Positions 14,443 to 56,925 of a stretch of DNA of 64,000 nucleotides are shown in pieces; position 1 is the stretch's first letter, and each line of letters starts with the position of its first letter. The stretch covers positions 6,527,431 to 6,591,430 of the forward strand of contig CM119266.1 of assembly GCA_051294375.1 (NCBI GenBank), read 5' to 3'. Position numbers and translations under genes: made by a program. The DNA comes from Paraspadella gotoi. Its lineage: Eukaryota > Animalia > Chaetognatha. Under the pieces are notes generated by a model. That model ran no database searches, was not told where the DNA came from, and saw only the letters and a program-made list of their open reading frames with translations.

Positions 14443-17400
14443 TTAATTAGGAGGGTATTGGTTTGAATGGTTATAGTTTCCATATCCTCCCGAGGATGAT
14501 GGAGTAGTAGGGCCGTTATGGCTCGAAGTTGGTCCATTGGTATTTCCTGCATTGTTTGGACCTGCAACAATTTATAAAAGGAATTGCACCAATTTTTAAA
14601 ATCATTTAAACAATGGTAACTATGGTTTTATATTGGTCTGTATATTATAAAATTTACCCGAACTGGAAGAATTTGGGCCGGTAGGACCATTGATTTGGCT
14701 TGGACCGCGCGGCGGCGGAGGATACGGTTGATACCTATATCCGCCCGGCCCATAAGAATTCGGTCCTTGGTGAGGACCCCCTGGTGGATGACTGTATCCT
14801 GGTCCCATTGGGGGACCATAACTGTAATGCCCCGATCCATACGGTTGCCCATAAACGTGTTGAGAAAATTGAGCTGTAATTATAATAAAACTTGATTTAT
14901 AGTTTTGATGGGTGTGAAACAAAGTTATATGCGGCTAAATTTTACTTTCGCCGACCGCGGTTTTGACGGTTCTTTTTTAAATATTTATTTTTTTTAAAAA
15001 ATTTTAAAAAAATATTGCTTTATTAACCTAACTCTTTTAAACCCTTACCAGTAACCACCCCTAACCCTTAAACCACCCATAACCCTAACCCCGGTCAGCG
15101 AAAATAAAAATAACCCATAATGCCATATATGCTTATTGTTCCTTATTACCATTGTGAGGGTGCACCGGGTAACCCGTGGAGCCCGAAGGCATGCTTTGAT
15201 TTGGTCGGCTGGGTGGACCTCCCGAGTTGTAGTTAGAGCCTGGGTAGTATAATGTAATGTAAATTAAATTAATGAAAATAGTTTTTAAGAAATTACAATA
15301 ATTATAACGAACGTCCTGACCTTCTTGCGAATGAGTTGGAGGTGGACCACCCTGTCTAGTTGCGTCTGATGATTCTGGGGTGTTCGTACGTGACTGACGT
15401 TAAAAAAATTTAAAATGTGAAACAAAATCTAATAACTTAAATTTTTTCAAAAACTTTATTAGATTTTCCAAAATCCATCAATAACTTACGCCTTGAGTGC
15501 TTTCTTTGTCCTCTTTTTTCTTGTCGCCAGATTGAGATCGAGAGTCTGATTGACTTCCTGGGGAAGACATGCCGCTGGAAGGTCTTGGAGGATGGGACAT
15601 ATTTGAAGACTCTCCATGCATATCTGAACCGCTTGGGCCTGGGGCATCTCTCATTGGTTGTGGATGTCCCGGATGAGGTCCATAAGTCCCATAAGCTGTT
15701 TAAACATTTATTATAAAATTTACCATAATTTTCTACTTTTAAAAAGAAAAATAAACCAAAGCTAACGGTTGCTAACCTGGTCCAGGTGGGTGGGCTCCAG
15801 GACCATGTGGTACAGATCCATGCGGTCCCGGGCCATGTGGACCTGATGAATGGGATCCGGGTCCAGGGGGATGTGCACCTGGTCCGTGAGGTCCACCCGA
15901 ATGAGGTCCTAGTCCATGAGGGCCTGGTCCATGTGAGCCAGAAGGCTGTTGTCCTGGTCCATGTGGACCAGATTGTGGTCCTGATCCATGTGGACCAGAA
16001 TGGTGTGGACTTGGCCCATGATGGCCAGATGGATGTGGTCCCGGTCCATGGGGGCTCGATGAATGGGGACCCTGTCCATGAGGTCCAGAATGTGGACCTG
16101 GTCCATGAGGCCCGGAAGGATGAGTAACTGGTCCATGAGGGCCAGAAGGGTGGGGACCTGCTCCATGAGGGCCAGAAGGGTGGGGACCTGCTCCATGAGG
16201 GCCAGAAGGGTGGGGACCTGCTCCATGAGGGCCAGAAGGGTGGGGACCTGCTCCATGAGGGCCAGAAGGGTGGGGACCTGCTCCATGAGGGCCAGAAGGG
16301 TGGGGACCTGCTCCATGAGGGCCAGAAGGGTGGGGACCTGCTCCATGAGGGCCAGAAGGGTGGGGACCTGCTCCATGAGGGCCAGAAGGGTGGGGACCTT
16401 GTCCATGAGGGCCAGTAGGATGAGAACTAGGTCCATGGGCGCTTGATGAATGAGGGCTAGGCCCATGTGGACCAGACGGATGGGGACTGGGTCCATGGGA
16501 ACCAGGATGAGGACTTGGTCCATGGGGGCCAGATTGATGAGGTCCTGCTCCATGTGGTCCTGGACCATGAGGGCCTGTTGGCTGTGGTCCAGGGCCATGT
16601 GGGCCCGAGGGATGGGATCCAGATCCATGGGGACCAGATGGATGTGGTCCAGGCCCGTGAGAACTTGAAGGATGTGGCGTAGGCCCATGCGGGCCAGATG
16701 AATGTGGTCCGGGTCCATGTGGACCACTTGAGTGGGGACCAGAGGGATGTGATCCTGGTCCGTGTGGGCCGGAAGGATGTGATCCTGGTCCGTGTGGTCC
16801 AGAAGGATGTGATCCTGGAGGCCCATGTGGCCAAGAGCCGCGGGAATGTGGTGGATATCCAGGATGTCCATAAGGAGGGGCAGGATGAGCTCCTTTGGAA
16901 AAAAAAAATTATACAAACGTTTAAAATAAACTGCAAAAATATATTATTTACCTGGATAGGTTGGTCTTCCGGGGGTATCGGACGTATTTTGGGGCGTTGG
17001 TCCAGTGGATGAACCAGGTGGTCCAGTTGTAGGAGTTGAGGGTAGTGCACCATTTGAATTAGGACGATCAGGGTGATTAGAAGGATGACCGGGTGGAGGA
17101 CCCCCTGGATGGCCATTAGGACTATCCTGCTGGGCGGGAGTCGAATGGGGGCCATGCATTGAACTCGAATATGAAGTCGCTGGTCCAGGATGTCCGGGTG
17201 GAGGTCCAGATGAATTGGAAGGATAACCATGTGGAGAGCTCATGCTGGTTGGCGGTCCAGGCGGACCGTGTGATGGCTGTGGTTGGTTAGGAGGCGCGTT
17301 GCCCATCTCAGGATGACCTTTTTGACTGCTCGACGGTCCGGAAGACGATGTTGATGGATTGTGTCCAGGCTGCCCCATTGAGGTTGAAGGCATGATCGAA

Positions 17401-18040
17401 GGATGCATCGCGTTAGGTCCTGGGCCGGAACCTTTAAAGCGTTTAAATGCCGTTAGATTATTTTTTTAAGATTAAAGAAATTATTATTATGGTTTAACAA
17501 AAAAAGCTACCTGGCGCTGGCAAGAGACTTCCCAGGTTTGAGTTCCCGGAATCGGCGAGTGTGGCCAGGTATACGAGATTCCGATGCAGGACCTGCTGAT
17601 ATTGTACGCAGTCCGACGGTTTCCCTCCAGGCTTGCTTTGTTGGTCTTGGATCGCTTGTATCAGTTGGTAATTTTCGTCCAGCATCTAAATTCAAATTAA
17701 AACGGTCACGAATGCTTTAATTTTATTTGCGCTTTAGAATCTGATTTTTCATTATTTTATATTCCAAAATTTGCCCAATTTGCATTAAATTTAATTAACC
17801 TTAACCTTAAGGCCTTTAAAATACAGCTATTTTTTAAACTATGTTTTATGTATTTGTAGATTTATGTAAATTATTGGAAAAAAAAACTTCATTTATACAT
17901 TTTTTCTAATTTCATTAGTGATGATATTCTTAAAACCTCACTCTTTAGTCCAATGATAATAAAAACTTTACCTTTTGAATATTGGACGGCGTCGGCGAAG
18001 GCTTATTCCTCATCGACGGCGAAAATGGCACCGACGACAT
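14443..18040 (-). CDS. SS18: SS18/SYT (SSXT/SNH domain) BAF-complex subunit homologue with expanded Gly-Pro-His low-complexity domain
   Basis: Exon 1 (18040-17972) MSSVPFSPSMRNKPSPTPSNIQK joins exon 2 (from 17685) MLDENYQLIQAIQDQQSKPGGKPSDCVQYQQVLHRNLVYLATLADS, the SNH/SSXT signature. Further exons: about 17431-16952, 16892-15777, about 15695-15490, about 15394-15320, about 15233-15150, about 14878-14655, about 14563-14443. Ends GGYGNYNHSNQYPPN-stop. Confidence 0.9.
14937..15111. mobile_element. Telomere-like-repeat TIR element, copy B (opposite orientation to copy A)
   Basis: Starts AAATTTTACTTTCGCCGACCGCGGTTTTG, contains CCCTAACCCTTAAACCACCCATAACCCTAACCC, and ends with degenerate TCAGCGAAAATAAAAAT. 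Lies in an SS18 intron. Confidence 0.65.
16131..16400 (-). repeat. Coding minisatellite, 9 x 30 bp, encoding PHGAGPHPSG
   Basis: Plus-strand unit CTCCATGAGGGCCAGAAGGGTGGGGACCTG. The nine copies are identical except the first base of copy 1 and the last base of copy 9. Sits in SS18 exon 16892-15777. Confidence 0.92.
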
Positions 18041-30111: not shown

Positions 30112-30830
30112 ATGTCGAGTCTGCTAAAGGCGGCCAAAGCGGCCAAAGCGCTCGTTATCCCGAAAGTTCAGCGACGCTGTTTCGGCCTCAGCGTCCCCGC
30201 CTCTCGTAAAGAAACGAAAAATATCGCGAAAATACAGGCACGCCCCCACCCATTCATTTTTTTTTTTTTGATTCCTAACTAGTTAATGTCGTCAACAATA
30301 ACGAAAGTCGAAACAAAGACGCCGAGCTAGAAGCTAATTCGAATATCTATCCTCTCTCGTTCCTTTTTTCTCCTTTCTCTCCCTGTTTCTCTTTGTCCTT
30401 CAATCCCTCTTCCCCCCCCTTCCTTCCCCCAACCCCCGCGTAGGAGAACCGAGTATCGCTGATCGGCGCCGTTCAGGAGGACGTCTCCATTCTCACCTAC
30501 GTGCCAGAACTGCATTTGCAGCACCGCCGGGTCCGTATCTTTCAGCCGGCAAAGAACGCCATGCAGAGCGGCACCGCCAACATAAACCTCTGGCTGATCG
30601 AGTGGGACGCTTGGGAGCGATGGGAGAATCCACTGATGGGCTGGACATCGTCGGGCGACCCGCTCTCCAACACCCAGGTCGAGTTCCACTCTCTCGAGGA
30701 CGCCATCGCCTTTTGCGAGCGGAACAAGTGGACCTACGACGTGGACACTCCGCAGAGGATGAGGAAATTTGTCAAAAATTACGGGGACAACTTCTCTTGG
30801 GACAGAAGGACGCGGTCCTCGTGCAAGTGA
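30112..30830 (+). CDS. NDUFS4: NADH:ubiquinone oxidoreductase subunit S4
   Basis: Exons 30112-30237 and 30444-30830. RRVRIFQPAKNAMQSG..WERWENPLMGWTSSGDPLSN..KNYGDNFSWDRRTR is the NDUFS4 signature. An in-frame join needs a GC donor. Confidence 0.95.
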
Positions 30831-31892: not shown

Positions 31893-33441
31893 TCACGACG
31901 CCCACTGCGCCAAATCCGCCAGGTCCGCGTCGTCTTCTTCCACCGCCACCGCTGTTAAACGGGATTCAGGGGGAGACATCATTCTCGTCACTAGCATTAT
32001 TATCAGCATAGCATTATGCTATTTATTATGTTGACGTAGTGTTATAGTAACACTCACGTTTGGCCTTTGTGGGTGTCGGCTTCGGAAGGGCGTCCGCGGG
32101 CACCGAAGGGAGGCCTACGTCGTCCGTCACGCCAGACGGAATGCTTATCAAGTTGAGGTCCAATTCCTCCTGTTTTTCGACAAAAAACAACTTTTAATTA
32201 AGCGCGTAATTGTTGCAGGAGGAATTTTTTCAAAAAAATTACTTTTCCCTAACACATGCAAGATCTCATTTCGATAACACTGGGAGTAATTTATAAATTT
32301 AATCATCAATGATACGGAGGCAGCTTTAAGTCTTGCATAAAGTCGCTATCTTATCCGATATCCAGCATCCATACCGATAGTTACCGATACTCAAAATATT
32401 TCCAGACAGGTTTATCGCCGACTCGCTGACTTGCCTGAAGTTGTCTTGCATCAGCCGACTTACAAGTTCAAGCCAAACGCTTAGCGGTTTCAACTCGTAT
32501 ATTTTCATATATCGATCTAGCGCCCAACCCAAACTCCATTGAACCAAGCTTTCCAAACCCACCTGCTCCAGCTCGTCGAGCTCCGCGAGAAGTTCGTCTT
32601 CGTCGACGTCCGCGCCGAAACTGACGGGATTCGAGATAGCTTCCGAGATTTCGTTGGCGACGTCCTGTTGTTCCTGAATGTCGTCCATCAAGTCCGAAAT
32701 CTTGTCCACGTCCCTGGAGAGGGAGAGAGTCGGCGTTGGCGGTGGGGAGGAGGAAGTAAAGAAATGATCCTTTTTAGTCTTTCAAAGAATGTTGAGAAAT
32801 CCCTCACGGATCTCAAAATACTCACAGGTCGTTGTGCGCATTTTTAAGCGCTTGCGACGCGCTGTGCATAGCTTTGAGGACTTCGGTGTTCGTGGAGGCG
32901 TTCTCCAGCGCCTCTCGTTGAAGCTCGATGGTGGAGAGAGTCCCGTCGATTTGGGCCAAATTCTTCTCGTAGCGTTTTTTTCGTTTCAACGCTTGGAGGG
33001 CGGCTGGAGAGCGGGAAAGAAAGAGTGGGGGAGCATTTCGTTGAAGCAGTCCAGCCTCTACCACTTCGAGTCTTATTTGGTTAAAATAAAAGCTTCCTTC
33101 CTTTTTGAATTCTAGGAAATTCGGTTCACAACAACTATTCACTCGGATATCGAGGGTAGAAATGGCCGTAACAAATATTGACCAATATATATATAATTAT
33201 ATATATAATAGGGAAAGCGCGACATGAGGCAAAATATCTTTCACACTTGGCGAGATTCACCTCTCTTATTCTTGGTTCCGTGCTTTTTGGCGTTCTGCAA
33301 TTCCTCGCCGATTTTCTTCTCCAGATGCTCCGACTTCTTGTTGAGCATCTCCTCTGTCTCCCGCAGCCGCTGGATCGCCGTTTGCGGGTCCTCACCTCCG
33401 TTCTTTTTCTTCCCGCCCATAATTTTGCCGAAGAAACTCAT
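31893..33441 (-). CDS. CHMP4: ESCRT-III subunit CHMP4/Snf7/shrub
   Basis: 5 exons: MSFFGKIMGGKKK..PQTAIQRLRETEEMLNKKSEHLEKKI..KNKR|AALQALKRKKRYEKNLAQIDGTLSTIELQREALENASTNTEVL..|DVDKISDLMDDIQEQQDVANEISEAISNP..DEDELLAELDELEQ|..|EEDDADLADLAQWAS-stop. Confidence 0.96.
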
Positions 33442-34462
33442 TCTGATTTTGTGTGTCTGTCTGTCTGTGTGAGGGTCGGGGGCGTCGCTGGAGAAAACCA
33501 AAATTCAAAAAAGAATGTTGAATACCGTTTTTGTCTCTTGCTCTATTTTTAAGAATTGACTGATGGTTTTCTTTTCCATTAGTATTACACGACAAAACTG
33601 GGTCTTTTTTGAATCAACGCGACATTTGAGAGACGATGACTCAGAGCGAGGTCGTTGATCGATCACTTTCGATCCCAGGCGACATTATCTAGAATGTCTT
33701 CTGATTCTTATTCAATTAAAACTTTATTGCGCAGAGATAATAAATGTTTACAAATTTAAAATTAGACTTCATTTATTGGAAGTAATTTTAGTGTAATGCG
33801 AATTAACTCTTAAATAAAATGTAAATTTTTCTCCGTTTTTGTTTTAATATAACAAGGCGCATTATGTCTGACATGTTTTGGAAACCCTCGTCACAAAGAC
33901 TTTTATTTAAAAAAAAAATCTAAAACTGACATTTTAAGTTTCCATAAATAAATGAAAATTTCAGTTTTGCTTTAATACAAGTGCCATTTTACTGCGTTTT
34001 GTTCCAATCGTGGTGCTGTAACCAACGGTTGGTTTTAATAATTATATGCTTTTTTTAAAATTATTGCTTGAAATATGAGTATTTCATTTTCTTCAATAAT
34101 CATGTGTGCTGTAGCATGTACTCACTTTTTTTGTTTTTTTTTTTAAATCCAATGCTAATTTATTACGATGTTAAAGCAGCTTCGAAGAGAGAGTTCGAAA
34201 CGTTCAGTTTCGTGGGCACCAAATATCTTCACGGGTTAATTTTACTTTCGTCTACCTTGAAGACAATTTTTCTTTCTGCAGACAGGGAATTATTTCTGGA
34301 TGTTGGTTCCTAGGTGTGTTTAACGATGACAAACACCAAGTTGGTGCTGACAGACGACGTCTCTTCATTGGTGGAAATATTCATGACGAGCGACCAATGA
34401 GAAGGCCCGCTGCTCTTTGTGTTCCGAATCGACGTCATCTGATCATCTGAAGCAATTCAAAG
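33442..34462. promoter_or_regulatory. Putative divergent promoter region between CHMP4 (-) and RANBP9/10 (+)
   Basis: Head-to-head start codons about 1 kb apart. GACCAATGAG CCAAT box near 34394 and TGACGTCA-like TCGACGTCAT near 34430. Inferred from position. Confidence 0.35.
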
Positions 34463-35578
34463 ATGGCTGCTGGACTCAGCTCACGCACAGCTGATAGCCC
34501 TTCTAGGCCTCCAGGGCCAACTTCACAGAGTCCCAGAGTGGTTCACCCGACGATGGACCGTCTCAAAATTCTCTACCCTCACGTCAACGAAGTCGAAACC
34601 CCTCTTCCGCGGTCCTGGAGTCCCAAAGACAAGTACAATTATATAGGACTCTCCCAGAACAATCTTCGCGTTCACTACAAAGGTGAGTCTTTGTCTCCTC
34701 CATTGTTCCCTGGGTCCCCGATAACACTATTATTCCTTTTGCATAATTGAATTAAAGGTTTTTGGTCAGTTAGTGGAACTCCTTGGAAACTAGTTGCTGT
34801 TATTTTCTGGAAGTTTAGTTGCAAAAGTTATTGCGCAATATCATAAACCAAATTGCTTGTATTGTCTTTGTCTTGAACCCGAATCCAATTTTCCTATTGA
34901 ACTGCGCAGAATTTCCTTATTTGTCCAACTTCTCATTTTGCTCGAAAATAGAATTAGTTTGATTTGGTTATGTAATTAGTAAAATATTAAAGTTTTAAAT
35001 TTTATTGTTTGCTATGTCTATCCGATCGTACAAAATGATCAAAACTCAGATGCTTCTAATATAAAATTTAAACATATTATTTTCTTGAAATTCTACTCTG
35101 ATTATTATTAATATTAGTATAATTATTAATAAAATGAAAGAACTTGACCTAATGAGCTTGGTATTCTATTGCTTTGTAACAAATAAAACTTTTTCTCGAA
35201 AGTACCCCCCAAAAAATTGCATCTAAATGCAAATATTTAGTATTAATTTTATATCAATTAAGCTTGCTTTATTTATTTCCTCTCGTATTTTAGTTCTTTA
35301 ATGCTTAGTCTTATTTATTCTTTCTATGATTAGTATGGGATCCAATTTGTGCGTTATATCGATACTTTATATCTAGGTCACTTTTACAAAAAGTACCTAT
35401 GAATTTGCATTTTTGACTCTGAGCTCTTCAGAAGGAGCGAAAGAAAGAAGCTTAAATTATTCTTTAAATCCTCAGTTAATCCTTTCCGACCGGTTTCTCT
35501 CTGCTCCTTTTCTCCGTACTATACAGTCCTAATGATTTGGAAATTGGATTTATTTTTTGTCTCTGGCGCCCCGTCGCG

Positions 35579-35617
<39 letters not shown>

Positions 35618-37495
35618 CTTACCCAGGAGTCGGCAAGACCCCAAAGGACGCAGCGTCAGTGCGCGCGACCCACCCGATCCCCGCCTCCTGCGGCATCTAC
35701 TATTTCGAAGTCAAGATCCACAGCAAAGGACGCGATGGGTGAGTCGACGTCGACCGAGAGGACGGTTGGAGTGTGGAGGGTCTTTAGTTTTTGAGGGTTG
35801 AATCTTGCGCTACCCCTACCCCAAAGGGGTATCATAGTATTGGCTTGGCAGAATGTCTCGATTTCAACCGGGGGAGGGATAGGTCGTCGGCAGCTTTGTA
35901 TAGTCAGTCTGAGCAGTCTCAGTGAGCACCCTGTAATCTAATCTATATTATATCAGAGGAGCTACACGACAGTAATCAGGAAACACGAGAACCCAACGCC
36001 TCTCCTATTATATCTAATGGTTCTTGATAGCTGAAGGGGAAATGGGTAATATATCAAAATAAAACACAAACGCGTAAGAAAATGTTTTATTTGTCAATAT
36101 ATAATTAAATATTCAAATAAATTAGTAATCTTCACGGAAGTTTCTTCCTTACATCGAGACGGTTCGTGACAAGGTCTGTTTTAGTCTGTTTTTTGGTCAT
36201 AGGTTTTTATAGTAAATGTTATTAATTTGTTTAAAAAACTCTTTTGACAAATGTTTTGGGTTGTATCTCCTTTGCGTTCAGTTCATATTCAACATGCCAA
36301 TATTCATATATCTGATTTAAGAATTCAGCAAATATAAAAAATTCAGCGACGTCGATGAATGATCCGCCTGATTTTGAGCCGTGATCCTTGACGGTCTCTG
36401 TCTATCTATCCGTTCGACCGATCGTTATCTTTATCTTCCAGATACATGGGCATCGGCCTTTCGGCCCAAGGGGTCAACATGAACCGCCTGCCCGGCTGGG
36501 ACAAGAACTCTTACGGTTACCACGGCGACGACGGGCATTCCTTCTGCTCGTCGGGCACGGGGCAGCCTTACGGCCCGACCTTCACCACTGGCGACGTCAT
36601 CGGCTGCTGCGTCAATCTCATCGAGAACACCTGCTTCTACACCAAGAACGGGATCCACCTCGGCACCGCCTTCACGGATCTTCCGGTTGGTTTCTTTGCT
36701 GGGTTTTGTGGAGTCATATTAGACTTGTCAATTTGTCGTGGTTCGGAGGATGAATTAGCCGAGAAGTGCCAAAAGTCTATTCAAATTTTTCTCATTACGT
36801 AATTGTCCGACGAAAGTCTAACAAGAACCTTCCTGAAAATTATATAAACTATAATATTATTTCTAAAAATTTCGAACATTCCACATTCCACAAATCTTCT
36901 AATCTTTTAAAAATGTTCAGTTATCAGTATGTTTGAGAATTATTCAGAATCTTCCAGAGACTTAAAGAAACCTTCGAAAACCTACCGAAAATATTTAGGA
37001 ACTTCCAGAAGCCTTCAGAAACATTTCAGAATTCAAACATGAGGGTCCGGTCTGGGCATGTATTAACAAAACCGGAGCAAATCCGTTCTTTCAAATTTTT
37101 TTACCTTTGGAAATGTATATAACTCATTACGACTCCCAAACTGGCGCATAATTCAATTACAGAAAACTTTTTAAATTTTTAAAAATTTTTAAGCATCTCT
37201 TCGCGCGCTTGACAGCGACCTTTTTTCGATATTACAAATTTGGTTTGCAAACTGTGGGATTGTCGAAAATTGGAAACAAAAGAAAACATTTTTAATTAGC
37301 GGTTATAAGTCGATTTACGAAAGTACACTTAGGATGGACAGGCTTTTAAACCACATCTATATATAATCGAACTGAACATTAACGAATTTGATTGAAAGAA
37401 GTCAGCGTTATAAATATTATATTATATTTTGCTATTGCTATTTATTATCTATAGTTTTCGTTCTTGTCTTTTAATTTTTCCTGACATCTTCATCG

Positions 37496-37571
<76 letters not shown>

Positions 37572-39545
37572 AGCTCTCATCAACTTGTTCACTCTAATCC
37601 CCATTCCCCCCACGTCCTCCAACTCCAGCCGAACCTGTACCCGACGGTGGGGCTTCAAACTCCCGGCGAAGTCGTCGACGCCAACTTCGGCCAATCCCCG
37701 TTCGTCTTCAACATCGAAGACTTGATGCGCGAGATGCGCGCGCGAACACGCGCTCTCTACGAGCGAATCCCCGTCCCCGACACGCAGGGCGAGTGGCAAG
37801 ACACCATACAGAAGTGAGTGGTGGGCACAACCGTTTGGGTTGTGTGAGGGGTTACTACGGCTGCGGCAGCCTTTTGAATCAGTTTCTTTTCTCTGACTAA
37901 AATGCCCATTTAAAATCTATGGACAATTAACTCGGTTCACCGATCAAATCACACTATACTCTTCTCATTATAGATTTTTTAACAACTTCAAAATATAAAT
38001 GAAATTTTGAAACAAAAAAAAAAATGGTATTCAATCCTAAGATGTGTGTGACGGGATCCTTGAATTAACGATGAGTCGTTTCTCAACCCCCCCTTCCTCA
38101 GAATGGTCTCCTCCTACCTCGTTCACCACGGCTACTCGTCGACGGCCGAATCTTTTACGCGACAAGCCGGACAGCCTTTCCATCAGGCGAGACCCATAGA
38201 TGATCCGTTGTCAATGACTCAATCATTATTAAGGGAAGACGGATCCATTGATTTAAAAAAATTTACGAAAAAATTTGANNNNNNNNNNATCCGTCTTCCC
38301 TTAACAGGGTTTATATGTTGCGGCCTTCTCGAAAATTGGTAAAGTTTAACTGGAATAACTTTTTTTGAATTGGTGATGGATATTTGAAATTTATTTCTTT
38401 TTCTGTTACGAAATGACAAACACATTACGTATAGTCAACGTAAATTGCTATGGATATACTTTGAATAGATGAAAAATAACTTTTTTCTATCGTTAACGAT
38501 GAAAATGAATTTGTTTTCCCAGGACATCTCTTCGATGCGGACGCGACAGAGAATTCTTCGTCTCGTGATGAACGGAAGAATCGGCGAAGCCATCGCCTCC
38601 GTCGACGTCGAATATCCTGGGCTCATGGACCGCAATCCCGATCTGCTCTTCAGGTGGGGGGGAATGGCGTTGGCAGGGCAAGGCATGGCAAGGCATGGCC
38701 AGGCATGGCATGGCTTGGAAGTGTCGAAATGATCGTTGTTAGGGGGGGGCTTAGCCATTTTAAATGAAAGATGTAGAAAAAACTTATCCAATTCATGATT
38801 TGATGGTTTTATATTCAGAATGAAAGTGCGTCAATTCATCGAGATGGTCAATGGAACTGAAAGCAGCGTCTCGCCGTCCTCCAAAGGCGACGCCGCTCGA
38901 GGAGGAGGCGTCAACGGCGTCGCCTCGTCCTCCAATGGTCTCCTCAGTCCCAACGGTTCGAAAATCTTTGGAATTATCACATCGTCTCTTTTTTTCTTTT
39001 TTTTTTATATTATTTCTATTTTTATAACATTGTGTAATTTTATCTATTTTCTCCATTCTATCCGCTTTTGTTTCCACTTCTTTCCATTTAATTCTCTCTC
39101 TCTATATCTTTCTCTCTCTCTCTATCTTTCTCTCTCTCTATCTTTCTCTCTCTCTCAGGCACGACCCCCACTTCCCTCTCGCCGGCGGGATCCTGCTCAG
39201 GCTCCTGTCCACCCTCCCCAAATTCCCACCACGCCGGCCAATGTCAGGGAGTGTCGTCAAACCCCAAGAACCGGCACAACCTGGCCTCCAACCTCAAGCA
39301 CGGCCGCGGTTCCGCCGCCAAACCCGGATCCGCCGCCGCCGCCGCCAAGTCCGCCAACTCGCGCCACGGAAGTCCCTTTGGCGCCACGGAGGCAGAGATG
39401 AACGACGCCAACCACGCCATGAATGGTAGCGGCGGAGGCGGCGGCGACGGCTCGTCTACTCACATCATTCAGGATTTAGGTGATCATCTCGTCTGGTTTA
39501 TACTTTTTCTTGGGTTTGTTTTTCTTTCTTTATTGAGATTCATCC

Positions 39546-39589
<44 letters not shown>

Positions 39590-39789
39590 TTCCCCGCCCA
39601 CCCTCGCCAGGCTCGGACGGTCTCCCTCTCTTGGCCAGCAACGGCGCTCAAGGCGGCCTCACGGCGGCGGCGGTGATGGCATCGCTCAATGGCGCCTCTG
39701 GTGCTACGACGGCCGGCGGCGACAATGGCCACGCCCTCGTCGGTGCCGGAGACGAGAGGATGGACGACGACGACGAGGGGATGGGTGGG

Positions 39790-39828
<39 letters not shown>

Positions 39829-42800
39829 CTTATTCGTTTGTTCGTTCATTCATATCTTCCAGTATTTATCCGTTCGTTTATTNNNNNNNNNNTTCATTCA
39901 TTCGTTCATTTATTTCTTTCATTCATTCCTTCCTACAGAGATCGACGGCGCCGACAGCACGACGACGTCGGCGAATTCCCACTCCAGTTCGCCTTCGCTA
40001 TCGGTGGCGGCGCCATCCCTTTCTTCCGGCGCCGCGCCGCCCCCGCCGTCTCTCCACCACCCGTCGCCTTTCCCGCCTCACGCCTCGTCCCCCGGCGCGC
40101 CCGACGCCGCCGCCGGATCTCGTTCGCCAACTTCCGCCCCTTCCGCCGCCACTCGACATTACGCCACACAAAATACAACAGGTTAACTACTCGGTGTGTG
40201 GCGGTATGAGCACCGTTATCACCTTCGACTGCAGTGCTGCTGAATCGTGAAGAGAAATGTTTCGGAAAAACTCGTCAGTTTTTCAAATGTAAATTTATTA
40301 TTCATATAGCCAAAGAACAAACTAGAAATTGTCAACAGTAGCTCATGAATGACCCCACGAAATCCTTATCGCCGTCGCCTCTTTACTTCCCTTTGGGCGG
40401 CGACTTGGGGGGCGACTTAGCACCGCCTTTTGCCGGAGTCTTGGGCTGAGCGACTTTTGTGAGAGACGAGGATGCCAAGTCGGTCATGACGTATTTCGCC
40501 GTTTGAGGCTGTTAAATGTCAACCTTGCAAGTTTTATCTTCTCTTTGCATTGAGGTCTCTCTCTCTCCCTCTCCCATCCCCCTCCCCCCCTCTCCCACCC
40601 CCCTCCCCCTTCCCCTCCCCACTCACTTGAAACCTAAACTCTCTGACGGCGTCGAATCCTTCGCCGATTTGAATGTTGCTCCCGACGGAGGTAACTCCGC
40701 GGAAGGAGATCGTTGAAGCCGATGACGATTTTTTATTCAGCGGAATGTTTTTGAGGCCGAATCGATTTTGGGCGCAAAACTTGCACCTGGAACAGTCGTA
40801 TCTTATATCACATTACTACAAGAAAGAATTTTTTCGCCCTGATTCTCACCAGACTCGATGCTTCTCCGCCATATAAAAGCTTTGTTGTCCAATGAGGTTC
40901 TTTTGACAAGTTTTGCACTTCATGCAGTCCCAGTGACAGATGTAATCCTCAAAGAGAAAGTCTTCCGGGTGCATACCGTCCGGGAACGCTGAAGGCAGAA
41001 AACGATGATTTGAAATATGTAATAATTTTCTCTAAAGATCTTTTATTATTTGTTTCTTTTTCTTTGACTCGCTCACCAAAGGCTTTGCTGGCGGTGATCT
41101 TCGCCGCGCCTCCGCCCTTTCCCGCCTGATGAGCCTGTAACTTCATCTGCGACTGTTTGAGACTTTCTTCCAGCGAGGATCTGGACTCCTTTGCTGAAAA
41201 GGGTTAAAGGTGGTCGCTAGTCAGCAGATGTAGCATGACTTAAATCGATGTTTGCTAAGTTTCTTACAAGCTTTTTCACGTTTTTTCAAAGGCCCTTTGC
41301 AGACGTGGCAGATTTCCATGTCGTAGATGTTCTTAAAGCACTCCTGGCAGTATTGTTTTCTGGCGACCTGTTTTAAGACTCATTCTAAACGTCTTTAAAA
41401 GCCACTATTAAGCATAGACCAAATCCCACCAAAAGATTCCTCGGTTCTTCCTCTTCTTCCCCTTCTCCCTCTCCGAACAACGCCTCCGGGGCGCCGCCCT
41501 CCGTCATCGGCTCGGACGGCGCCCCGTCCGGCGACGACGGCGGTTCCGGCGTCGGCTCTTCTTCGCTTTCCGGCCCCCCCTCGGGTATTTCCGGCTCTGC
41601 CAAGGGAATAACCCGATATTTATTTAATTATTACGGTTATCACGAATTGTTCGGTTGTTAGATACGATTTTATAAAAGAAAGATATATATGAATATTTGT
41701 TTGACATTGAATTCTCAATTGCTCATACGATAAATACAATGTTTTGTACCCGGCTCCAACATGTGGGTCGAATCGACGAGGCTCCTGCCGCACTCGTCGC
41801 AAACGTCCACCATGTCGACGCAGTTTCTGTGGTATTTCCGTCCTGAAACCCATTGTTCAATTTAATGTCCTTTATGTCATATGACTTTTACTATGTAAAT
41901 CAACGGGCTGACGACCTCTGTAGTATTTTCCTCCTTGAGGTTCTATCAACTCTTTACAGTAAGGACACTTTTCCGCATCGGCGAACAGACATTCCTCGCA
42001 GAAAAATAGTTTGCATTCTTTGTTTTTGAAGAATTTGACTTGAAAGTCTCCCAAGTTACGGTTACACTTCATACACTGCAATCAGGGTTAAATTGAGGGA
42101 AATGAGTGGAGTGGCCTCTAATGGTGTACATTTTACTAGTATACCACTAAACAATCGTTGTGCATCGGTTTCTTCTCGCATCTTCTCGCGTCGTCGTAAT
42201 TGTGAATCGTCTCCTCGCAAACTACGCAACTGAGTTTTCCTCTGGTCGCCAGCGTTTCTTGTGGAATTCCTTGGTCCTGATTTGCGATTATAGTCGCTTT
42301 GGGCCTTTTGTTGTATTTTTGTGGTATTTTTTTTAGCAAACTGACCTCCATCTCTGCAATGAACTGGGCCTCTTTAATGGCCTCAATAAGCTTTTCCAAA
42401 TCCGTATCTCCATCAGTTGAAGTTTCTTTCTCGAATTTCCACGGCATTTCGGAAAGAATGAGATAAAGACAAAGAATGCTAGATGTAGAAAGAAAGTTAT
42501 TGCTATAAAGAGTATTTAAAAATCCTTTTTTAATGGCTTTTTTTCATAAATATTCAGCGACCTCATCACTGTCTGGCACGCCTACCTCCGCCGGAAACGC
42601 CGCCGCCGCATCCTCATCCTCATACCAAAACCATCGCCACTCTCCTTATCCTTCTCCGAACAATATTACTACCAACTCTCAATCTAATATTCATCATAAT
42701 CAGAGGTTAATATTATTCGATTGGAGTAATATTATATGAGAGACTGTGATCCTTCACTTTGCTTCATCTCCTTTCCCCAATAGTTATTCTCAGTGCGGAT

Positions 42801-45800
42801 CGGGGAAAAGCTCTTCCGGCGGCGGAGCGGCGTCCGGCCAACGGCAGCTGTGCGGCGGATCGCAGCGCGCGATCGAGCAGATGTTACAATTTGGCAGGTG
42901 ATTTCACGATCGAGACTGTCGAGAGCGCCTTTGGTTTCATTTATTCCTTATCGTCTCCGCGAAACCTTTTCTAGGGAACTTCATGCGATGAGCGTCCAAT
43001 TAAGAAGAACGTATGGCAAGAACGAAGTCAACAAACAGATGTTACAAGAGGCCTTCAGTCTGCTCGCTTACGCCGACCCCTGGAACAGTCCCGTCGGTGG
43101 TCAGCTCGACCCCGCCAAACGGGAGACCATCTGCTCAGCACTCAATTCCGCAATTTTAGGTGATTTAAGAAAAGTTTTGTCTGAGGATTGCTGTTTTTGT
43201 GGTTGTCTTGCACAAACGCCATTTTTTTCTCGATAGCTAACTAGATTTCAACTAAATTATGAATAAACTGTCCTATTTTCTTCGTTAAGACAAAAAATTT
43301 ACATAAATAATTTCGTTAAGGTTTATTTAAGAAATATACAAATATTTAAACAAAACGTTTTTAGTCTAAAACAAACAATCAACGCTTTTTCACACGTTAA
43401 TGACCGGCTTGTAGGAGAGTTGGCCCTCTTTCCAGCGTCTCTTCAACTCCTGGGCAAAATTTTAAGCAACGAATGAGTTGGAATTATGGGGTGAAGGAAT
43501 TGTGATTAGTAATTAATGATTGTTTGGAGAAGTGTACTGGTCAAATTGTTAATGGATTAAGTGAGACTCGTTCACTTTCACGGCATCCTTTGCTCAAATT
43601 CACCTTCGTCAAAAGTTTTCTCTCTTTTGTGGCGCCGATCATCACCGCTCGATTCTCCTGCGCCCGACGACACAAATAGGGCACGACCTCCTCAATGGGA
43701 CCGTAGGGCACGTACTTGTATACGGAATATCTAAAAACCCCAGGGTGGTTAAAATGTTGGCCTTTGGACTTTAGCTTCCCTGATTTCGAATCCACTCTCA
43801 CCCAGCGGCTCCGAGTGAGAAGCTTAGTTGATCGCACATTCCTAGTAGCTGGCCGAAGTTGACGATGTGGTCCTCGGGGGTGATTCCCAGTTCGTTCATC
43901 CGCTTAGTAGAGAAGAGTCATGCATACATACACACCTTAAGCCACCATACTGTAAATATTTTAAAGATAGTTTAGTTATTAAAAGAATGAAAAGTTTTTG
44001 TATTGGTTCAACTAGTATCACACAATAACTCGGTACAGAGTAAAGGATATCACTTAACCTTGACGGCGAATCTGACAGAGTCCTCATTGTGTGAGGCTAA
44101 CATAAAGGAGATTCTCGAAGGGTTTTGCTTGGCGGCTCTCGTCATGCACATGTCGATAACTCTGTGAGAAGTGTGGTTCAAACAAGCGCTTGGCTTTGGA
44201 AATCTGGTTCATTCCCTTACCCATTGTACATAGCGTTGGTGGACTCGTAGTCAGGATTTATTGGGTCAGGATAGCCCATAGCCTTCGCCCTCTCTCGTTC
44301 TTGCTCCATGTAGGCTCCTCTGACAAACTACAAGCGACAGAAATGTATAGTATGTAAATTTGTCTATTGGCAATTCTGGTTTTATTTTTTCTGAGTACCT
44401 TGCAGGCAAAGTGAAAGTTTTCCCTCTCTGAGAGAGCGAGGTCTTCTTTGACGTTGTCTTTGGTGTCTCGTCGGTAGCATTGATAGGTGTTGTAAACCAA
44501 AGGTTTTTCTTTGTTGAAGACCTGTTATTAATTATCTCATTTGCAATTTGATTCTTTAAACGACCGGATCAACCGGTACTAACCCTTTGCATTTCGAGGG
44601 TAAGTCTTGAGATGGCCGTCTGAAAGTAAGTCTGCTCCGCATCGACCATCACCCTCACTCCTCTATCCTCTGCGTGTTCGATCACCGCGTTGATTCGGTG
44701 AATCATCCTCTTCATCTGTCGCTCTTCCTCTCTCGTTAGTCCTTTTTAGAATTTGTAGATTTTCCATCTTACTTTAAAGTAATACTATTTCTTTCCCTCT
44801 GGCCTTCTTTTTTTCTTACCCTTGCCAATGTGTTGGAGTTGTCCGGTTTCTTCATTGGCCACAGTGAAAATCGGCGCCAAACTTTTGTTTATGTCTCTCA
44901 AAGATTTCCAACTCAGGAGATCTTGATCGTCTTCGGATTTTATGGTGATCCTGTTCGTGAAAGTTAGATACAGTGAGATACAGATACCACGAGAGTTACA
45001 CCGCTATGTGCTGTTTAAACGTTTTCCAACCCATTTGTTGCGCACCACAACTGATGGCATTAGTAGTGTCAAAAAAATTACCAAAGGAAAATGATTCATT
45101 TCAAAAGGCACTTATCTGTCACTGTGTGAAAAAAAGAGAGTCTCGTAATAGTTACATGAAAAAACCCGTTCATTCAATATTTATGCAAAGAGAGTTCGAA
45201 CCCCCCCCTCTACCTAGGGACGTCGTCGTCTCGAAAAGCTGGGACGGCGCCCAACGTTTTGATGACGCTCATCTTCAGTTTCTCGTATTCCTGATGAAAA
45301 ACCAAATTTGTCATACTCTTCCCCTTGAGTGACTTTAATCAAGAGCCTGATATACTTTTTTCCCTTCCAAGTCGACAACCATTAATCTTCTTTCCTCGGG
45401 ACTCAAAACGTAATCGCTGTTTGTGTCGTATTTTCTAAATAGTGTATCGATGTCGCCCACGGAATATCCAAGTTTGCTGAGTTGGTTGTGCCACGTTTCG
45501 TAGTCCATGTCCCCGCTTGGTCCCTGAAAATCATTTCTGTCAAAAAAAAAAAACCGAATTGTTTTGCTTAAATTTTTGAAAGGCAATTACCTCAATGTTG
45601 TCAACTGCTCTTTTGGAGACCTTTTGATAATATTGCTTGTTCTTAACCAACACCTCGGAGACGTTGAGCAAGAGTTTGGGTTTGCCGAGAGCGGTGATTT
45701 TGATGGCGGCGAAGCCCGCGCCGCCCGTCGTTCCCTGCACCGCATCGATGCTGTCCATGAAGATTCCTTGAAGCCACGCCTCAGAGTTTGAATCATTTTT

Positions 45801-48121
45801 TATAGTTTTTTTTCTCACATTGGGATTTAAATATTATTTATACTATGCTAATCATTATTGGGAATAGTCTATTCCTGTGATTCTTAGAACTAACCTTACA
45901 TTTGTCTAAATTTTTCTTTAAAAACATTCGCGTTTTTGTCCTTACCCATGTTCTTGTCGCAAGTCATCTCGTTTTCATAAAAATGTGTTCTTGCTGACGT
46001 GACTTTGTTCCTCCTATCTCCGAACGTCTCGTGAGATTTGGTGATGTGGCGGACAAATGTTCCTCCACCGGCCCCATCCTCGGCTCCTTTAGTATCCGCC
46101 GCATCCCGCTCCAGCCGCTGGGCCTTAGCTCCATCCATGTCCTCTTCGGCGCTGTAGTCTAGGATGCTCTTGACTCCGAAGGCCGCGTTGCGGGATATCG
46201 TGCCTTTTGGGTCGGTATCGAGTCTTGTCAGTGAGATTAGGTTAAAGATGGGTTCTAAATGCGGTCACGCCCACCTTGGATATCGTGTTTTCCTTCTCCG
46301 CCCACGAATTGACCGTAAATTGTCGCCCTCATGGCCTTCTTGAAAAGTCGCTTTCCCATAATTTTTCGCGATGTTTTAATAATGGTTTTCGCGTTGTCCA
46401 CCAGCTTGTCGAAAGTGCAAAGCTGGCAGAGAAGGCAGGTTATCTGTCATTTAATAGTTAAATACTTAAAATAAATAATAATATATACTCTGAAGACGAT
46501 GATGCTTCGTATGAGTTCGAGGGTGGATTTATTCTTGAAGCATTCCTTGGTGTTAGAAAAGGAAAGATCGAGCTTCTCAAAGTGAAGATCGCGACGAATC
46601 TTGTCGTCGACGGCCCCGACTTTTTCAGTTTCATCTTTGTGCGCGTAACATTTTTGGTTGAGGGCGTTGGACGAGAGACTTTGTATTCCTTGGAAAAATG
46701 AGGGACTGTAGTGACTTAATATCACTACTCGTTGGATATTTTTTAAATTGGGAAGCTGTCGATTGCTTGTAGTATCTTGTATCTAGAGCTATGCCAAAAC
46801 TACATGACTACTATAATGGGGGATTTGAATGTAAACAATACCTCTAAACCTTTGGTACGTTCGACTCTGACGTAAGCTCGATCGCGAAATGGACGCTAAC
46901 ATTTTTTTTTGAGGTGGAGTGAAAATCTGGGTTTAATTTAAGTTTCCATGTTTTTCGACGAAACTCTGCTGCGCGGTCGTTCATTTCAAGGGCTCGGCTC
47001 TCCGTGTAAATTGCTGCTTGGCCGAGATTAAGGGACGACGACGCCGATGATAAAAAAGATCGATCCCGTTCGAAAAAAAAGTTTAAAAAGTTTTATGATC
47101 GGTCACTCTACCTTGATTTAGCGGTTAACGGGTGTAAAGGTTGCCTTCGCAGATTGTTGATAATTTAGTATTACGGTTCTATTTATAACCGTAAATAAAA
47201 TGCACTGTTATTATCTCTAATTGATTTATTGGCTAACTTATTTTAGGGATTATTCTAACAGAGGGATATCTCTGTTGTAAAGATGATTACCCTGATTATA
47301 CATGACATCGGTTAATATAGGTTCAGTGGATATTTAATTAGTGACTTACTTAATGGTTTGAAGGCTACTTGACTGGCTTCTTGGTAAGACTAATGAACTC
47401 GAGAGTTAGGCTTGCAATGTATTCAAGTATAGACCTATGAAAAGATAGCAATTACATGTTATTATCTTAATGGATGCTAAACCTAAGTGTTGAGCTCGCA
47501 AGGGCATAGTGGTTCAAAACCGACCCTTGTAATACTTTTTTTTTATTAATACTAAAAACAAAATTAGAAACATTATCAATTGTCTGAGAATATATTTCTT
47601 TTATTAACCATAGAAAAGTCAGCTGGAATCACAAGAATAAATAAAGTAGTAAACTAGCAATTATGATGATAAAATCAATAATTATTTAGCTATTAGTTGA
47701 ACCACAAATAAACATGATCATTTACTAATGTAAAATATTAATATTGAACCCAAAACCCCAAAACCTCAAAACCCGCAAAAGAACAAAAATTTATCAAAGC
47801 TTAATCAGAATACGACAATATGCAAATGAGATTGAGGAACTCCATCTCATTCCAGATAATTCACAAATTAATCTGCTACATTATAGTTAATTAAATTTGA
47901 AAAAAAGTTAGCGTAAAAAGACACTAAACATCCCTTTCCTCCTAATCCTTCCTTTTTTTTTCCTCCCCTCTTTCACTCCCTCCACTTCAGAGTCGCAAAA
48001 CCTTCCTCGTCAGCCTCCCCTCGAAGTCGCCATCTCGCACGCGCGCCAGTGCCTCCACCTCATGTCGCGCGCGCACATCGGCGCATGCGCCTTCGCCGAC
48101 GTTGAGACCTATCTAAGTTGA
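34463..48121 (+). CDS. RANBP9: Ran-binding protein 9/10 (SPRY-LisH-CTLH-CRA, CTLH/GID E3 ligase scaffold); host of two nested genes
   Basis: Approximate exons: 34463-34682, 35627-35738, 36442-36686, 37628-37813, 38103-38186, 38523-38653, 38819-38955, 39159-39479, 39611-39784, 39939-40181, 42558-42705, 42784-42897, 42975-43160, 47991-48121. [44 protein letters not shown]; Lis[19 protein letters not shown]; [38 protein letters not shown]; C-terminus [43 protein letters not shown]. Confidence 0.93.
35581..35613 (+). repeat. (CT)n microsatellite directly upstream of a 3' splice site
   Basis: About 16 CT units ending about 13 nt before the RANBP9 exon 2 acceptor. Confidence 0.9.
36790..37035. repeat. 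Degenerate GAACCTTCCAGAA-type tandem tract in a RANBP9 intron
   Basis: Repeated variants AAGAACCTTCCTGAAA, GAATCTTCCAGAGA, AAACCTTCGAAA, GGAACTTCCAGAAGCCTTCAGAA. Confidence 0.45.
37499..37569 (+). repeat. (CT)35 microsatellite near a 3' splice site
   Basis: Pure CT run in a RANBP9 intron, about 60 nt upstream of the acceptor at about 37627. Confidence 0.95.
38279..38288. other. Assembly gap (10 N)
   Basis: Run of N inside a RANBP9 intron. Confidence 0.98.
39883..39892. other. Assembly gap (10 N)
   Basis: Run of N inside a (CTTT)n/(CATT)n-rich RANBP9 intron. Confidence 0.98.
40383..42447 (-). CDS. Divergent LIM-domain (zinc finger) protein nested antisense in a RANBP9 intron
   Basis: 8 exons join in frame via GT-AG. 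LIM1 CVVC..HNDCLV|CMKC..CEEC; LIM2 [16 protein letters not shown]..[acidic insert]..CQEC; LIM3 CHVC..[insert]..[15 protein letters not shown]; basic C-terminus [11 protein letters not shown]-stop. The start at 42447 is tentative. Confidence 0.8.
43390..46902 (-). CDS. PRODH: Proline dehydrogenase (mitochondrial), nested antisense in the last RANBP9 intron
   Basis: About 13 exons. Presequence [21 protein letters not shown]. Motifs [134 protein letters not shown]. Confidence 0.96.

Positions 48122-49313: not shown

Positions 49314-49359
<46 letters not shown>
49314..49359 (+). repeat. Poly(T) homopolymer, 46 nt
   Basis: Direct count. No flanking target-site duplication is apparent. Confidence 0.9.
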
Positions 49360-49360
<1 letters not shown>

Positions 49361-50580
49361 TCGATTAATTATAACCAGAAAATTTTCGGTGTTTCACTGC
49401 GATCGAATGGAAGATATGCACTAGAAGCGGAGAGACTCTCCGCAGACATCAGAAGGTTTTATATCAGTTATTGTCTTTTTTTGGGGGGGGGTCGTTGAAT
49501 AAAAAACTTTGGGGAGGGGTTATTTTGTTTACCAAATTTGAGAGAGAAATTAAGCACGCCTTTTTTTCCAAGTTTTTTTTCTTTTTGGTAATCATATATC
49601 AATTATTCAAAGTTGTTTTTATGTCGATCTAAATCCTACTATTTGCTTGTAAGTAGACCTATAATCTTGTGCGGTTTTTTTTCTTTTGTGATGTGTAATC
49701 CGACAAGTTTGAACCCATTGTCGCATTTTTACTGATCAACAACCTAAATTCTTATTAGAAATTTTGAGAAAGATTTCACTGAAGATTTTTTGAGATTTCG
49801 TTGTATTAAGGACTAGATGTATATGAGACTAAAAACGTACCATTTTATCCACACTTTTTGTAGGTACAAAGAGTTATTTTCTTTTTTTGCTAAAGTAGAT
49901 TAGAAAAATTTTCGCTTCATGAGAAATACGTTTTATTTAGGAATTTTGGTATAAATGTATAGCAAATCACAATCTTTATTGATTGTCACAAGGCGCTGTA
50001 ATATCAAGACAGTTAATATACCATTATTTCCTAACAAACATAGTTGCACTGGTTTTCTTTAATTTAAAAGCAGTTAATCAGAAAAATCTTCATTTTCGAT
50101 ATCGCTATTTAAACGATGCTCGGCTTAGAAACTAATTAAAAAATAGAAATGGATGATTATAAATACGAAAACAAGTTCTTTATTTCGAGCACTGACTTTA
50201 TTCTGTATATAAGGTCATTGATTAATTGCTATCGATTTTGATTTTGTAGATTGAACTCTTATTTTATTATTGATCAATGATTACGACGTCGCTAGCATAA
50301 TTGAGTTGTACGCTTAGGTGCTACAAGTAGTTTTAATTTGTTTGCTATTTCAGGTTAATTTTTCAAGATAAAACAATTAGCTAGTATGGATCCTCCTCTG
50401 GGAAGATAAATATTTCGAAAAAAGGGAAACTTTCAGTTTAAAAGAATTCAATCTATAGAGTTTACAAGTGAGAATAAATATTTGACTAGGTATGCTAACA
50501 CATACTAGCTAAAAGCTCAAAACTAATCAGAAAAAAACTAAAGGTTGTCATCTCAGTGAGGAACTACGTTCGGATTCGCT

Positions 50581-52205
50581 ATGAACGTCGCCGCCGCCTC
50601 CTTTGGCCATTTCGTCGCGCCGAAGTCGCCCGCCGCCGCCTTTAAATTTTACCCTTTCGTTTTCAAAGAAATTCGTGGAACGCGCAGCGCCGCCTCCACC
50701 TCTGCCGCCAACTTTCAAGCGGCGTTAAGACGCGATCCCCGCATCGTCCGCTCAGGAGGTTGGGTGAGTCAGTCACAGGTGACTGAAGACGGCCGGTTGC
50801 ACCAAGGCTTCCTTCTCGAAATGCTGGAAGAGGCGGGAATGGTGGCCGCCGCCAACCACATCCTTCAGCATGGCGCCGCCAAAACTTCCTCCGTTCCTAC
50901 TTTGGTTAGGATGGATCGGGTAAGTCCTTTTAGTTTTTGATGTGTAATGTTTTATGACAACCAGAAACGTTTTCGATACAGTGTTTAATCAGTCGCGGTT
51001 TATTAACCAAAAAGTGTTATTTAGGTAGCTAAAATATTTGTCTTTACTCTTTTTAGTTTATTCATCCTGCATTCATTTGAACCAGGGGTTTTCAAAATAA
51101 ACTTTTCTACATAGTTTTTTTACAAAATTTATTAATTTATTTATATTTATTTATTTATATTTATATTTATTTTATATTCTTAACTTACTTTTTTAATGGA
51201 ATGTCTTGAGTCGTGACAGACATATTAGTGCCTTATCGCGTCGTAATTGATTATCCATGTCTCGCAGGTGGAATTTCTAGACGCCAACTTCGTCGGCGAA
51301 ATTATCGGCATCGATTCTCTCGTCACCTTTACGTCCGATCGATCGATGGAAGTCAGCGTCGCCGTCGAAGCCTCCGGACTTTCGTTGTAAAAATCCATCC
51401 TCGATCCTCTGCGGTGAAACGAAACCTTCAATTCGCTTCTCCCCCCCCCCTTCGACGAAATCCCCTCAGGGGCGAATTGAAAAAGCGGTTGACGACGATC
51501 GCTCGCCTCTGGTTCGTCGCCGTTGACTTCGAAGGCGACAGTTCGTCGTCCATCGTCGCGGCGCCCCCGCTAACGCTCGACGAAGATCAACGCGCCGCGG
51601 GTCTGAGGCGCTATTCCGCTCAAAAGCAGAGCCGCGCCGCCCGCCGTCCCGCGCGTCAGTCAGTACCGGAAGTGGCGATCTGGTTGGGCGATCGAGACTT
51701 TGGCTCCGGAACCGTCGACGCCAGTCAGTTCTGCCTCGCTCAATACGTCAACGTTAACGATTGTGACGAGCGCCGCTTCCTCACCGCCGGCGCGCTACTA
51801 AAGCCCTCGTTGGAAGCGGCGACAACTGTGGCGCGACTTCACGCTCGCGGCGCCCGCTGCGTTCCCGTTTCTCTCAACGATTACGACTTTCGACGCCGCG
51901 TTGAATCCGGCGCCGTACTTCACCTTCAAGCGCACGCGACCTTCGCTGATCGAGAGGATATCGAGGTGGAGGTGGTGGCGCACGGATGGATTATCGATCT
52001 TCAATCGATGGCGCTAAAGAAAGACGCCGCGTTCGCCGTCGGATTCTTTTCTTTCGTCGCCGTCGACGCCGATGGGAAGAAGGTGGGCGTGCCGGCGCTG
52101 AAGGTGGAGACGCAGGAAGAGAGAGAAGTGTTCGAGGAGGGGAAGAGGAGGAAGGAGATGAAGTGGATGGAGCGAGAAGAATTCGAACAGGTTGGGGGGA
52201 AATAA
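50581..52205 (+). CDS. Acyl-CoA thioesterase with tandem HotDog domains (ACOT7-like)
   Basis: Exons 50581-50919, about 51268-51385 and about 51470-52205. HotDog 1 GRLHQGFLLEMLEEAG..TLVRMDR|VEFL..VGEII..VTFTSDRSMEVSVAVEA; C-terminal FFSFVAVDADGKKVGVPALKVETQEEREVFEEGKRR, typical of ACOT7/11/12. Confidence 0.8.

Positions 52206-55856: not shown

Positions 55857-56925
<1,069 letters not shown>

Follow-up and report, generated by a model that had tools for sequence, protein, structure and literature searches.

We analyzed a stretch of 64,000 nucleotides (nt) from the chaetognath Paraspadella gotoi (contig CM119266.1, positions 6,527,431 to 6,591,430; hereafter, the window), in which a RANBP9/10 (RanBPM) orthologue occupies positions 34463-48121 of the plus strand, with 14 exons, 809 amino acids, and zero internal stops. 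A LIM-domain gene (40383-42447) and a gene for proline dehydrogenase, PRODH (43390-46902), lie between these bounds, and both were recovered as complete minus-strand genes exactly where the original prediction had put them (Table 1). As read from the sequence, the locus very probably consists of one RANBP9/10 gene that hosts two complete antisense genes in separate introns and has its last exon beyond PRODH. This was the central claim of the original prediction, and it is well supported by homology, by intron position and phase, by the splice sites, and by gap-free sequence. The LIM coding sequence falls wholly inside intron 10 and that of PRODH wholly inside intron 13, which makes both of them nested genes at the level of the coding sequence.

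The host is identified by its domains and by its similarity to solved structures. Pfam places a SPRY domain (PF00622, E 2.3e-26) at residues 98-214 of the RANBP9/10 model, a LisH motif (22.2 bits, cut-off 21.6) at residues 255-272, and the CTLH/CRA family (PF10607) in two stretches, the best at residues 696-789. In a phmmer search of PDB sequences, human RANBP9 (7nsc_A) matched over its full length with an E of 2e-218, and RANBP10 (9soc_A) with an E of 2.9e-211. The two human proteins and the window protein share the same domain order (SPRY-LisH-CTLH-CRA), are highly similar from SPRY through CTLH, and align in the CRA region through the last residues. They differ in the low-complexity linker, which is much longer in the window protein, giving 809 amino acids as compared with ~600 in most invertebrate orthologues. 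The core of the protein is ~85% identical to many phyla alike. Its exon model came from an exhaustive search of splice-site combinations that preserve one open frame. Four exon chains were free of stops and differed solely at the join of exons 1 and 2, and we chose the chain that retains a conserved 11-residue sequence there. An ungapped alignment to human RANBP9 across the join of exons 5 and 6 supports the GC-AG intron that follows exon 5.

The last exon is central to the argument, as it lies on the far side of PRODH. The original prediction had the CRA exon ending in NSAIL at a phase-1 donor; this holds, although the exon ends at 43159 and the GT occupies 43160-43161, one base from where it had been put. 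The translation then given for 47991-48121, 43 residues followed by a stop, matches ours exactly, and the resemblance to the RANBP9/10 C-terminus that had been proposed is borne out by the phmmer alignment to 7nsc_A and by tblastn with four orthologues. Across the join of exons 13 and 14, residues 683-808 of the model are matched to residues 603-728 of 7nsc_A, a chain of 729 residues (independent E-value of the domain, 1.1e-51). The Pfam CRA match ends at residue 789, that is, 23 residues into exon 14, and a further PDB chain (9sne_A) matches up to residue 793, also inside exon 14. A CRA region that runs to the end of the protein is a trait of the RANBP9/RANBP10 family; it is present here and requires exon 14. 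When the Lineus, human, amphioxus, and Lingula orthologues were used as tblastn queries against the whole window, the matches were collinear and single-copy, and the final ~42 residues matched solely at 47990-48115 (E 1e-8 to 2e-13). For example, Lineus residues 496-559 fall at 42967-43158, and residues 560-601 at 47990-48115. No second RANBP9-like copy and no other match to the C-terminus was found in the window with these four queries, which argues that exon 14 is not a stray duplicate. Its 43 codons are intact and 45-64% identical to the orthologues, and it opens with AG TCG.., the AG completing the GAG (E) begun by the last G of exon 13.

The intron that would be removed between these exons has the features of an old one. 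In amphioxus, the last 43 codons also form a separate exon (donor ..CTA G|gtcagt, acceptor cag|AA TCT..) behind an intron of 771 nt, at a codon and phase (1) identical to those of intron 13. The phase-1 acceptor is shared by Lingula, and the Lineus gene is interrupted at this place by an intron of ~146 nt. With a position and phase common to amphioxus, Lingula, and Lineus, intron 13 is ancient and has expanded to 4,831 nt in the window. In leave-one-out weight-matrix scores (mean donor 6.0, mean acceptor 5.0), its donor (8.3) and acceptor (8.2) are both above the means, and those of intron 10 (6.3 and 4.4) are about average. The statement that most introns here measure 60-500 bp was right: among 36 introns in the three genes, the median is 101 nt and 31 are at most 336 nt. 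No other intron among the 36 is as long as the two hosts (2,376 and 4,831 nt), and three more RANBP9 introns measure 703-944 nt. The unusual length of the host introns is accounted for by the nested genes, as the LIM coding span covers 2,065 nt (87%) of intron 10 and that of PRODH 73% of intron 13. Runs of N occur in the window only at 38279-38288 (intron 5) and 39883-39892 (intron 9), and 39893-64000 is gap-free. The predicted joins 40181/42558 and 43159/47991 draw on collinearity, homology, phase, conserved intron position, and splice signals.

Table 1. Features of the RANBP9/10 locus, in window coordinates
Feature	Position	Strand	Details
RANBP9/10 exon 1	34463..34682	+	ATG at 34463; splice search; tblastn with amphioxus P0005 residues 4-80
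RANBP9/10 exon 2	35627..35738	+	Start of SPRY; splice search, tblastn, Pfam
RANBP9/10 exon 3	36442..36685	+	SPRY; tblastn ~80% identity to four orthologues
RANBP9/10 exon 4	37629..37813	+	End of SPRY; splice search, tblastn
RANBP9/10 exon 5	38102..38186	+	LisH; GC donor CAG|gcgaga
RANBP9/10 exon 6	38523..38653	+	CTLH; splice search, phmmer, tblastn
RANBP9/10 exon 7	38819..38955	+	Splice search, phmmer, tblastn
RANBP9/10 exon 8	39159..39479	+	Low-complexity linker; open frame and GT-AG sites only, borders less certain
RANBP9/10 exon 9	39611..39784	+	Linker; splice search
RANBP9/10 exon 10	39939..40181	+	Linker; donor CAG|gttaac, score 6.3 vs mean 6.0
RANBP9/10 intron 10	40182..42557	+	2,376 nt, without N; contains LIM gene
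RANBP9/10 exon 11	42558..42705	+	Linker; splice search
RANBP9/10 exon 12	42784..42897	+	Start of CRA; phmmer, tblastn
RANBP9/10 exon 13	42975..43159	+	CRA; ends NSAIL + G, phase 1; donor TAG|gtgatt
RANBP9/10 intron 13	43160..47990	+	4,831 nt, without N; contains PRODH
RANBP9/10 exon 14 (last)	47991..48121	+	43 codons and stop; acceptor ctccctccacttcag|AG
Possible read-through tail	43160..43267	+	25 extra codons, stop ending 43236, AATAAA 43262-43267; sequence signals only
Nested LIM-domain gene	40383..42447	-	10 exons, 431 amino acids, stop included
LIM gene exons 1-5	42447-42346, 42276-42145, 42075-41916, 41842-41750, 41596-41430	-	
LIM gene exons 6-10	41367-41268, 41193-41077, 40988-40850, 40786-40627, 40508-40383	-	
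Nested PRODH	43390..46902	-	15 exons, ~676 amino acids, stop included; no internal stop
PRODH exons 1-5	46902-46842, 46727-46489, 46422-46275, 46203-45946, 45766-45591	-	
PRODH exons 6-10	45523-45356, 45290-45214, 44950-44826 (GC donor), 44741-44584, 44521-44399	-	
PRODH exons 11-15	44327-44221, 44161-44059, 43902-43802, 43730-43604, 43449-43390	-	

The LIM gene has GT-AG borders at every intron and no internal stop, and its product contains a LIM domain (PF00412, 31.4 bits, cut-off 22.9). Placing the donor of exon 2 at 42145 restored the H-x2-C-x2-C-x2-C spacing and removed a gap of one residue relative to the homologue P0121. The gene is lineage-restricted: in a set of 5.8 billion proteins, its product had two homologues, 45% and 40% identical to it. 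P0121 is the one at 45%, in an alignment that spans all exon joins. It is coded on a contig of 2,088 nt (L001) that ends in a poly(A) run and is therefore an mRNA, and no RANBP9-like sequence is present in this transcript. The LIM protein had no match among PDB sequences, and it was not assigned to a named LIM subfamily. Between the LIM start codon and RANBP9 exon 11, there are merely 110 nt (42448-42557), so the promoter or 5' untranslated region (UTR) of the LIM gene must overlap either the branch-point and polypyrimidine region of the host or host exons.

The PRODH product carries the Pro_dh catalytic domain (PF01619, E 3e-66) and is 69-73% identical to proteins of ~670 amino acids coded on transcript-size contigs and 44-45% identical to annotated animal PRODH1. 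Exons 3, 4, and 8 were adjusted against the closest relative (P0126), and the two unconserved 5' exons are uncertain. Refinement driven purely by homology trimmed these unconserved exons artificially, so exons 1 and 2 were kept as originally modeled. Compared with PRODH of fish, molluscs, and Daphnia, exon 6 (45356-45523, minus strand) and the relatives from JGI and Logan data have an insertion of ~50 residues. This insertion contains a canonical EF-hand loop, the counterpart of which in P0126 is DTNGDKLLSPEE; a Pfam scan of PRODH called no EF-hand at E<0.01.

The relatives of both nested genes sit on transcript-size contigs of their own: L001 (with its poly(A) tail), L005, and L007. These contigs of ~2 kb come from JGI samples and one Logan run, and a metagenome scan added one contig of 2.8 kb. 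An exact look-up of the three protein models found none of them in a collection of 15 billion proteins. Neither L001 and L005 nor the other loci contain the 3' end of the Spadella spliced leader (PMC2566580 supplement), and its one match in the window, with one mismatch, is at chance level. Elsewhere in animals, RANBP9 spans 11-40 kb and contains no called gene in the five species compared (Lineus, amphioxus, Lingula, Haliotis, and Ptychodera). In Solemya, PRODH is not a nested gene, and RANBP9 does not occur within 10 kb of it. As far as can be tested, the nesting appears specific to the lineage of the window. A search of literature full text for RanBPM with 'nested' returned nothing relevant.

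With 9 and 14 introns retained, respectively, the LIM gene and PRODH are not retrocopies. The two genes would instead have been relocated as genomic DNA, in a compact genome, into introns that had been short until then. They would now be transcribed from promoters of their own, and the host pre-mRNA would still be spliced from 40181 to 42558 and from 43159 to 47991, across both nested genes. Most likely, the genes share the locus in a selectively neutral way, and the arrangement is not a regulatory device.

Several observations weigh against nesting as described here. Both predicted junctions rest on homology rather than RNA, and exons 8-11 form a low-complexity linker devoid of homology, which leaves the borders of intron 10 to frame and splice signals. 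Around the nested genes, there were neither target-site duplications nor repeats other than short direct and inverted ones at chance level. The promoter or 5' UTR of the LIM gene may overlap host exons, in which case that gene would not be strictly intronic. The stop (43236) and AATAAA (43262) after exon 13 could possibly allow a truncated isoform, and such a short RANBP9 would be without the end of its CRA domain. Finally, sequence by itself leaves room for a chimeric contig.

The stop and poly(A) signal bear on two other explanations of the locus. Antisense transcription of PRODH or the LIM gene might hinder elongation of the host and promote reading through, with polyadenylation right behind exon 13, so that a CRA-truncated RANBP9 would be made and expression of host and nested genes would be mutually exclusive. 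The in-frame stop and AATAAA do stand just upstream of the 3' end of PRODH (43390), but an AATAAA is expected by chance in AT-rich intron sequence. In addition, exon 14 is well conserved and the splice sites are strong, so full-length splicing is the probable main outcome, and we consider such interference unlikely. The fact that exon 14 is conserved also speaks for production of full-length RANBP9. The same signals, together with a distance of 4.8 kb in a set of introns with a median of 101 nt, could also mean that exon 14 is a relic stranded after a rearrangement that brought PRODH in between exons 13 and 14, with the functional RANBP9 mRNA ending in the read-through tail or in an unrecognized terminal exon. 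However, a relic is hard to reconcile with intact codons at 45-64% identity, a matching phase, and an acceptor with a strong polypyrimidine tract, with a Pfam CRA match and solved chains (7nsc_A, 9sne_A) that reach into the exon, or with the finding that nothing else in the window matches the C-terminus. We regard it as very improbable.

An assembly artefact, with the PRODH and/or LIM segments misplaced in the RANBP9 locus, might be suspected from the two 10-N gaps within RANBP9. On either side of the gap at 38279-38288 in intron 5 lies an inverted repeat (ttaagggaagacggat ... atccgtcttcccttaa, ~38230-38305), which resembles a foldback or a product of misassembly. Misassembly near these gaps had been named as a possible refutation in the original prediction; on checking, one gap falls in intron 5 and the other in intron 9, outside the host introns, and the sequence from the second gap onward is continuous. 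An artefact would also need two independent misjoins, each exactly intronic and each keeping the order and orientation of the host exons, and it is scarcely credible. A broader proposal is that the nesting is kept lineage-wide, in a group of animals that is poorly sampled, and couples a scaffold of the CTLH/GID E3 ligase functionally to proline catabolism, with convergent PRODH transcription toggling RANBP9 between its full-length and CRA-truncated (43236) forms. A substrate receptor of the GID ligase recognizes N-terminal proline degrons, which would make such a pairing intriguing. We give this coupling very little chance. Both functional ideas of the original prediction, transcriptional interference and the link between GID and metabolism, find no support in the present analysis and are speculation.

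The surroundings of the locus can be described briefly. A Snf7/CHMP4-like gene (32329-33504, minus strand) is the head-to-head upstream neighbor of RANBP9 in the window. In Lineus, Lingula, and Haliotis (L002, L004, L008), this head-to-head position is held by a gene with a TSNAXIP1_N domain, a microsynteny that is conserved among the three and not seen beside the window RANBP9. Other features are NDUFS4 at 30444-30827 (plus strand; PF04800, E 2e-38), a GTPase of the ARF family with at least two exons at 56006-56739 (plus strand), and a long open frame lacking a Pfam match at 50560-52202 (plus strand). Genes are spaced ~1 kb apart, which confirms that the genome is compact. Microsatellites of the (CT)n or (TCTC)n type lie in four RANBP9 introns (35581-35614, 37498-37569, 39092-39156, and 39546-39589), at a distance of 2 to 60 nt before the acceptors of exons 2, 4, 8, and 9, and may double as polypyrimidine tracts. 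A T homopolymer of 46 nt (49314-49359), ~1.2 kb past the RANBP9 stop codon, may belong to the 3' UTR or to intergenic sequence. At ~16000-18000, there are coding-like tandem repeats, of the GPHGAGPHPS type on the minus strand, where a GC-skew peak of 0.249 coincides. Rfam and tRNA scans of the window gave no matches.

The chief consequence of the nesting is for annotation. A gene predictor that bars intronic genes would probably stop RANBP9 at 43236 or split it at the LIM gene, and a protein annotated to 43236 would lack the final 43 residues and, with them, the end of the CRA domain. That automated annotation truncates RANBP9 here, as had been expected, is plausible because the read-through frame ends in a stop at 43236 and is followed by AATAAA at 43262. 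In addition, the locus is a clean example of two intron-rich genes moved into ancient short introns in a compact genome. Judged by position and phase, one of the host introns is ancestral to bilaterians. The locus could serve studies of how nested genes originate. By itself, it opens no new biological question, as several percent of animal genes are nested antisense to a host.

The RANBP9/LIM/PRODH locus is a fresh instance of a well-known arrangement, that of opposite-strand nested genes. In human NF1, intron 27b hosts EVI2A, EVI2B, and OMG on the opposite strand. NF1 and the RANBP9 locus are alike in that a large multi-exon host splices across complete antisense protein-coding genes in an intron. 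They differ in that a single, very large intron houses three small genes in NF1, whereas in the window genes of 10 and 15 exons nearly fill separate introns.

Surveys of nested genes offer a wider comparison. According to two of them (PMC3192792; PMC3786989), nested opposite-strand genes are frequent, their expression was found to be uncorrelated with that of the host, and there is no general regulatory coupling between nested and host genes; in one of these, intronic genes are put at ~6% of Drosophila genes (PMC3786989). LRRTM genes in the alpha-catenin genes form a similar pairing of nested and host genes, and both the origin and the loss of this pairing can be followed from lineage to lineage (PMC3933685). 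LRRTM nesting is conserved in most jawed vertebrates (PMC3933685), whereas that of the window was not found outside its own genome. The pair of timeless2 and 2mit in Drosophila (PMC3786989) comes close to the present case, with an intronic protein-coding gene opposite to its host in a compact genome. While the two loci share this layout, the genes and the lineage are different, and the RANBP9 host of the window holds two nested genes, one of which isolates its last 43 codons.

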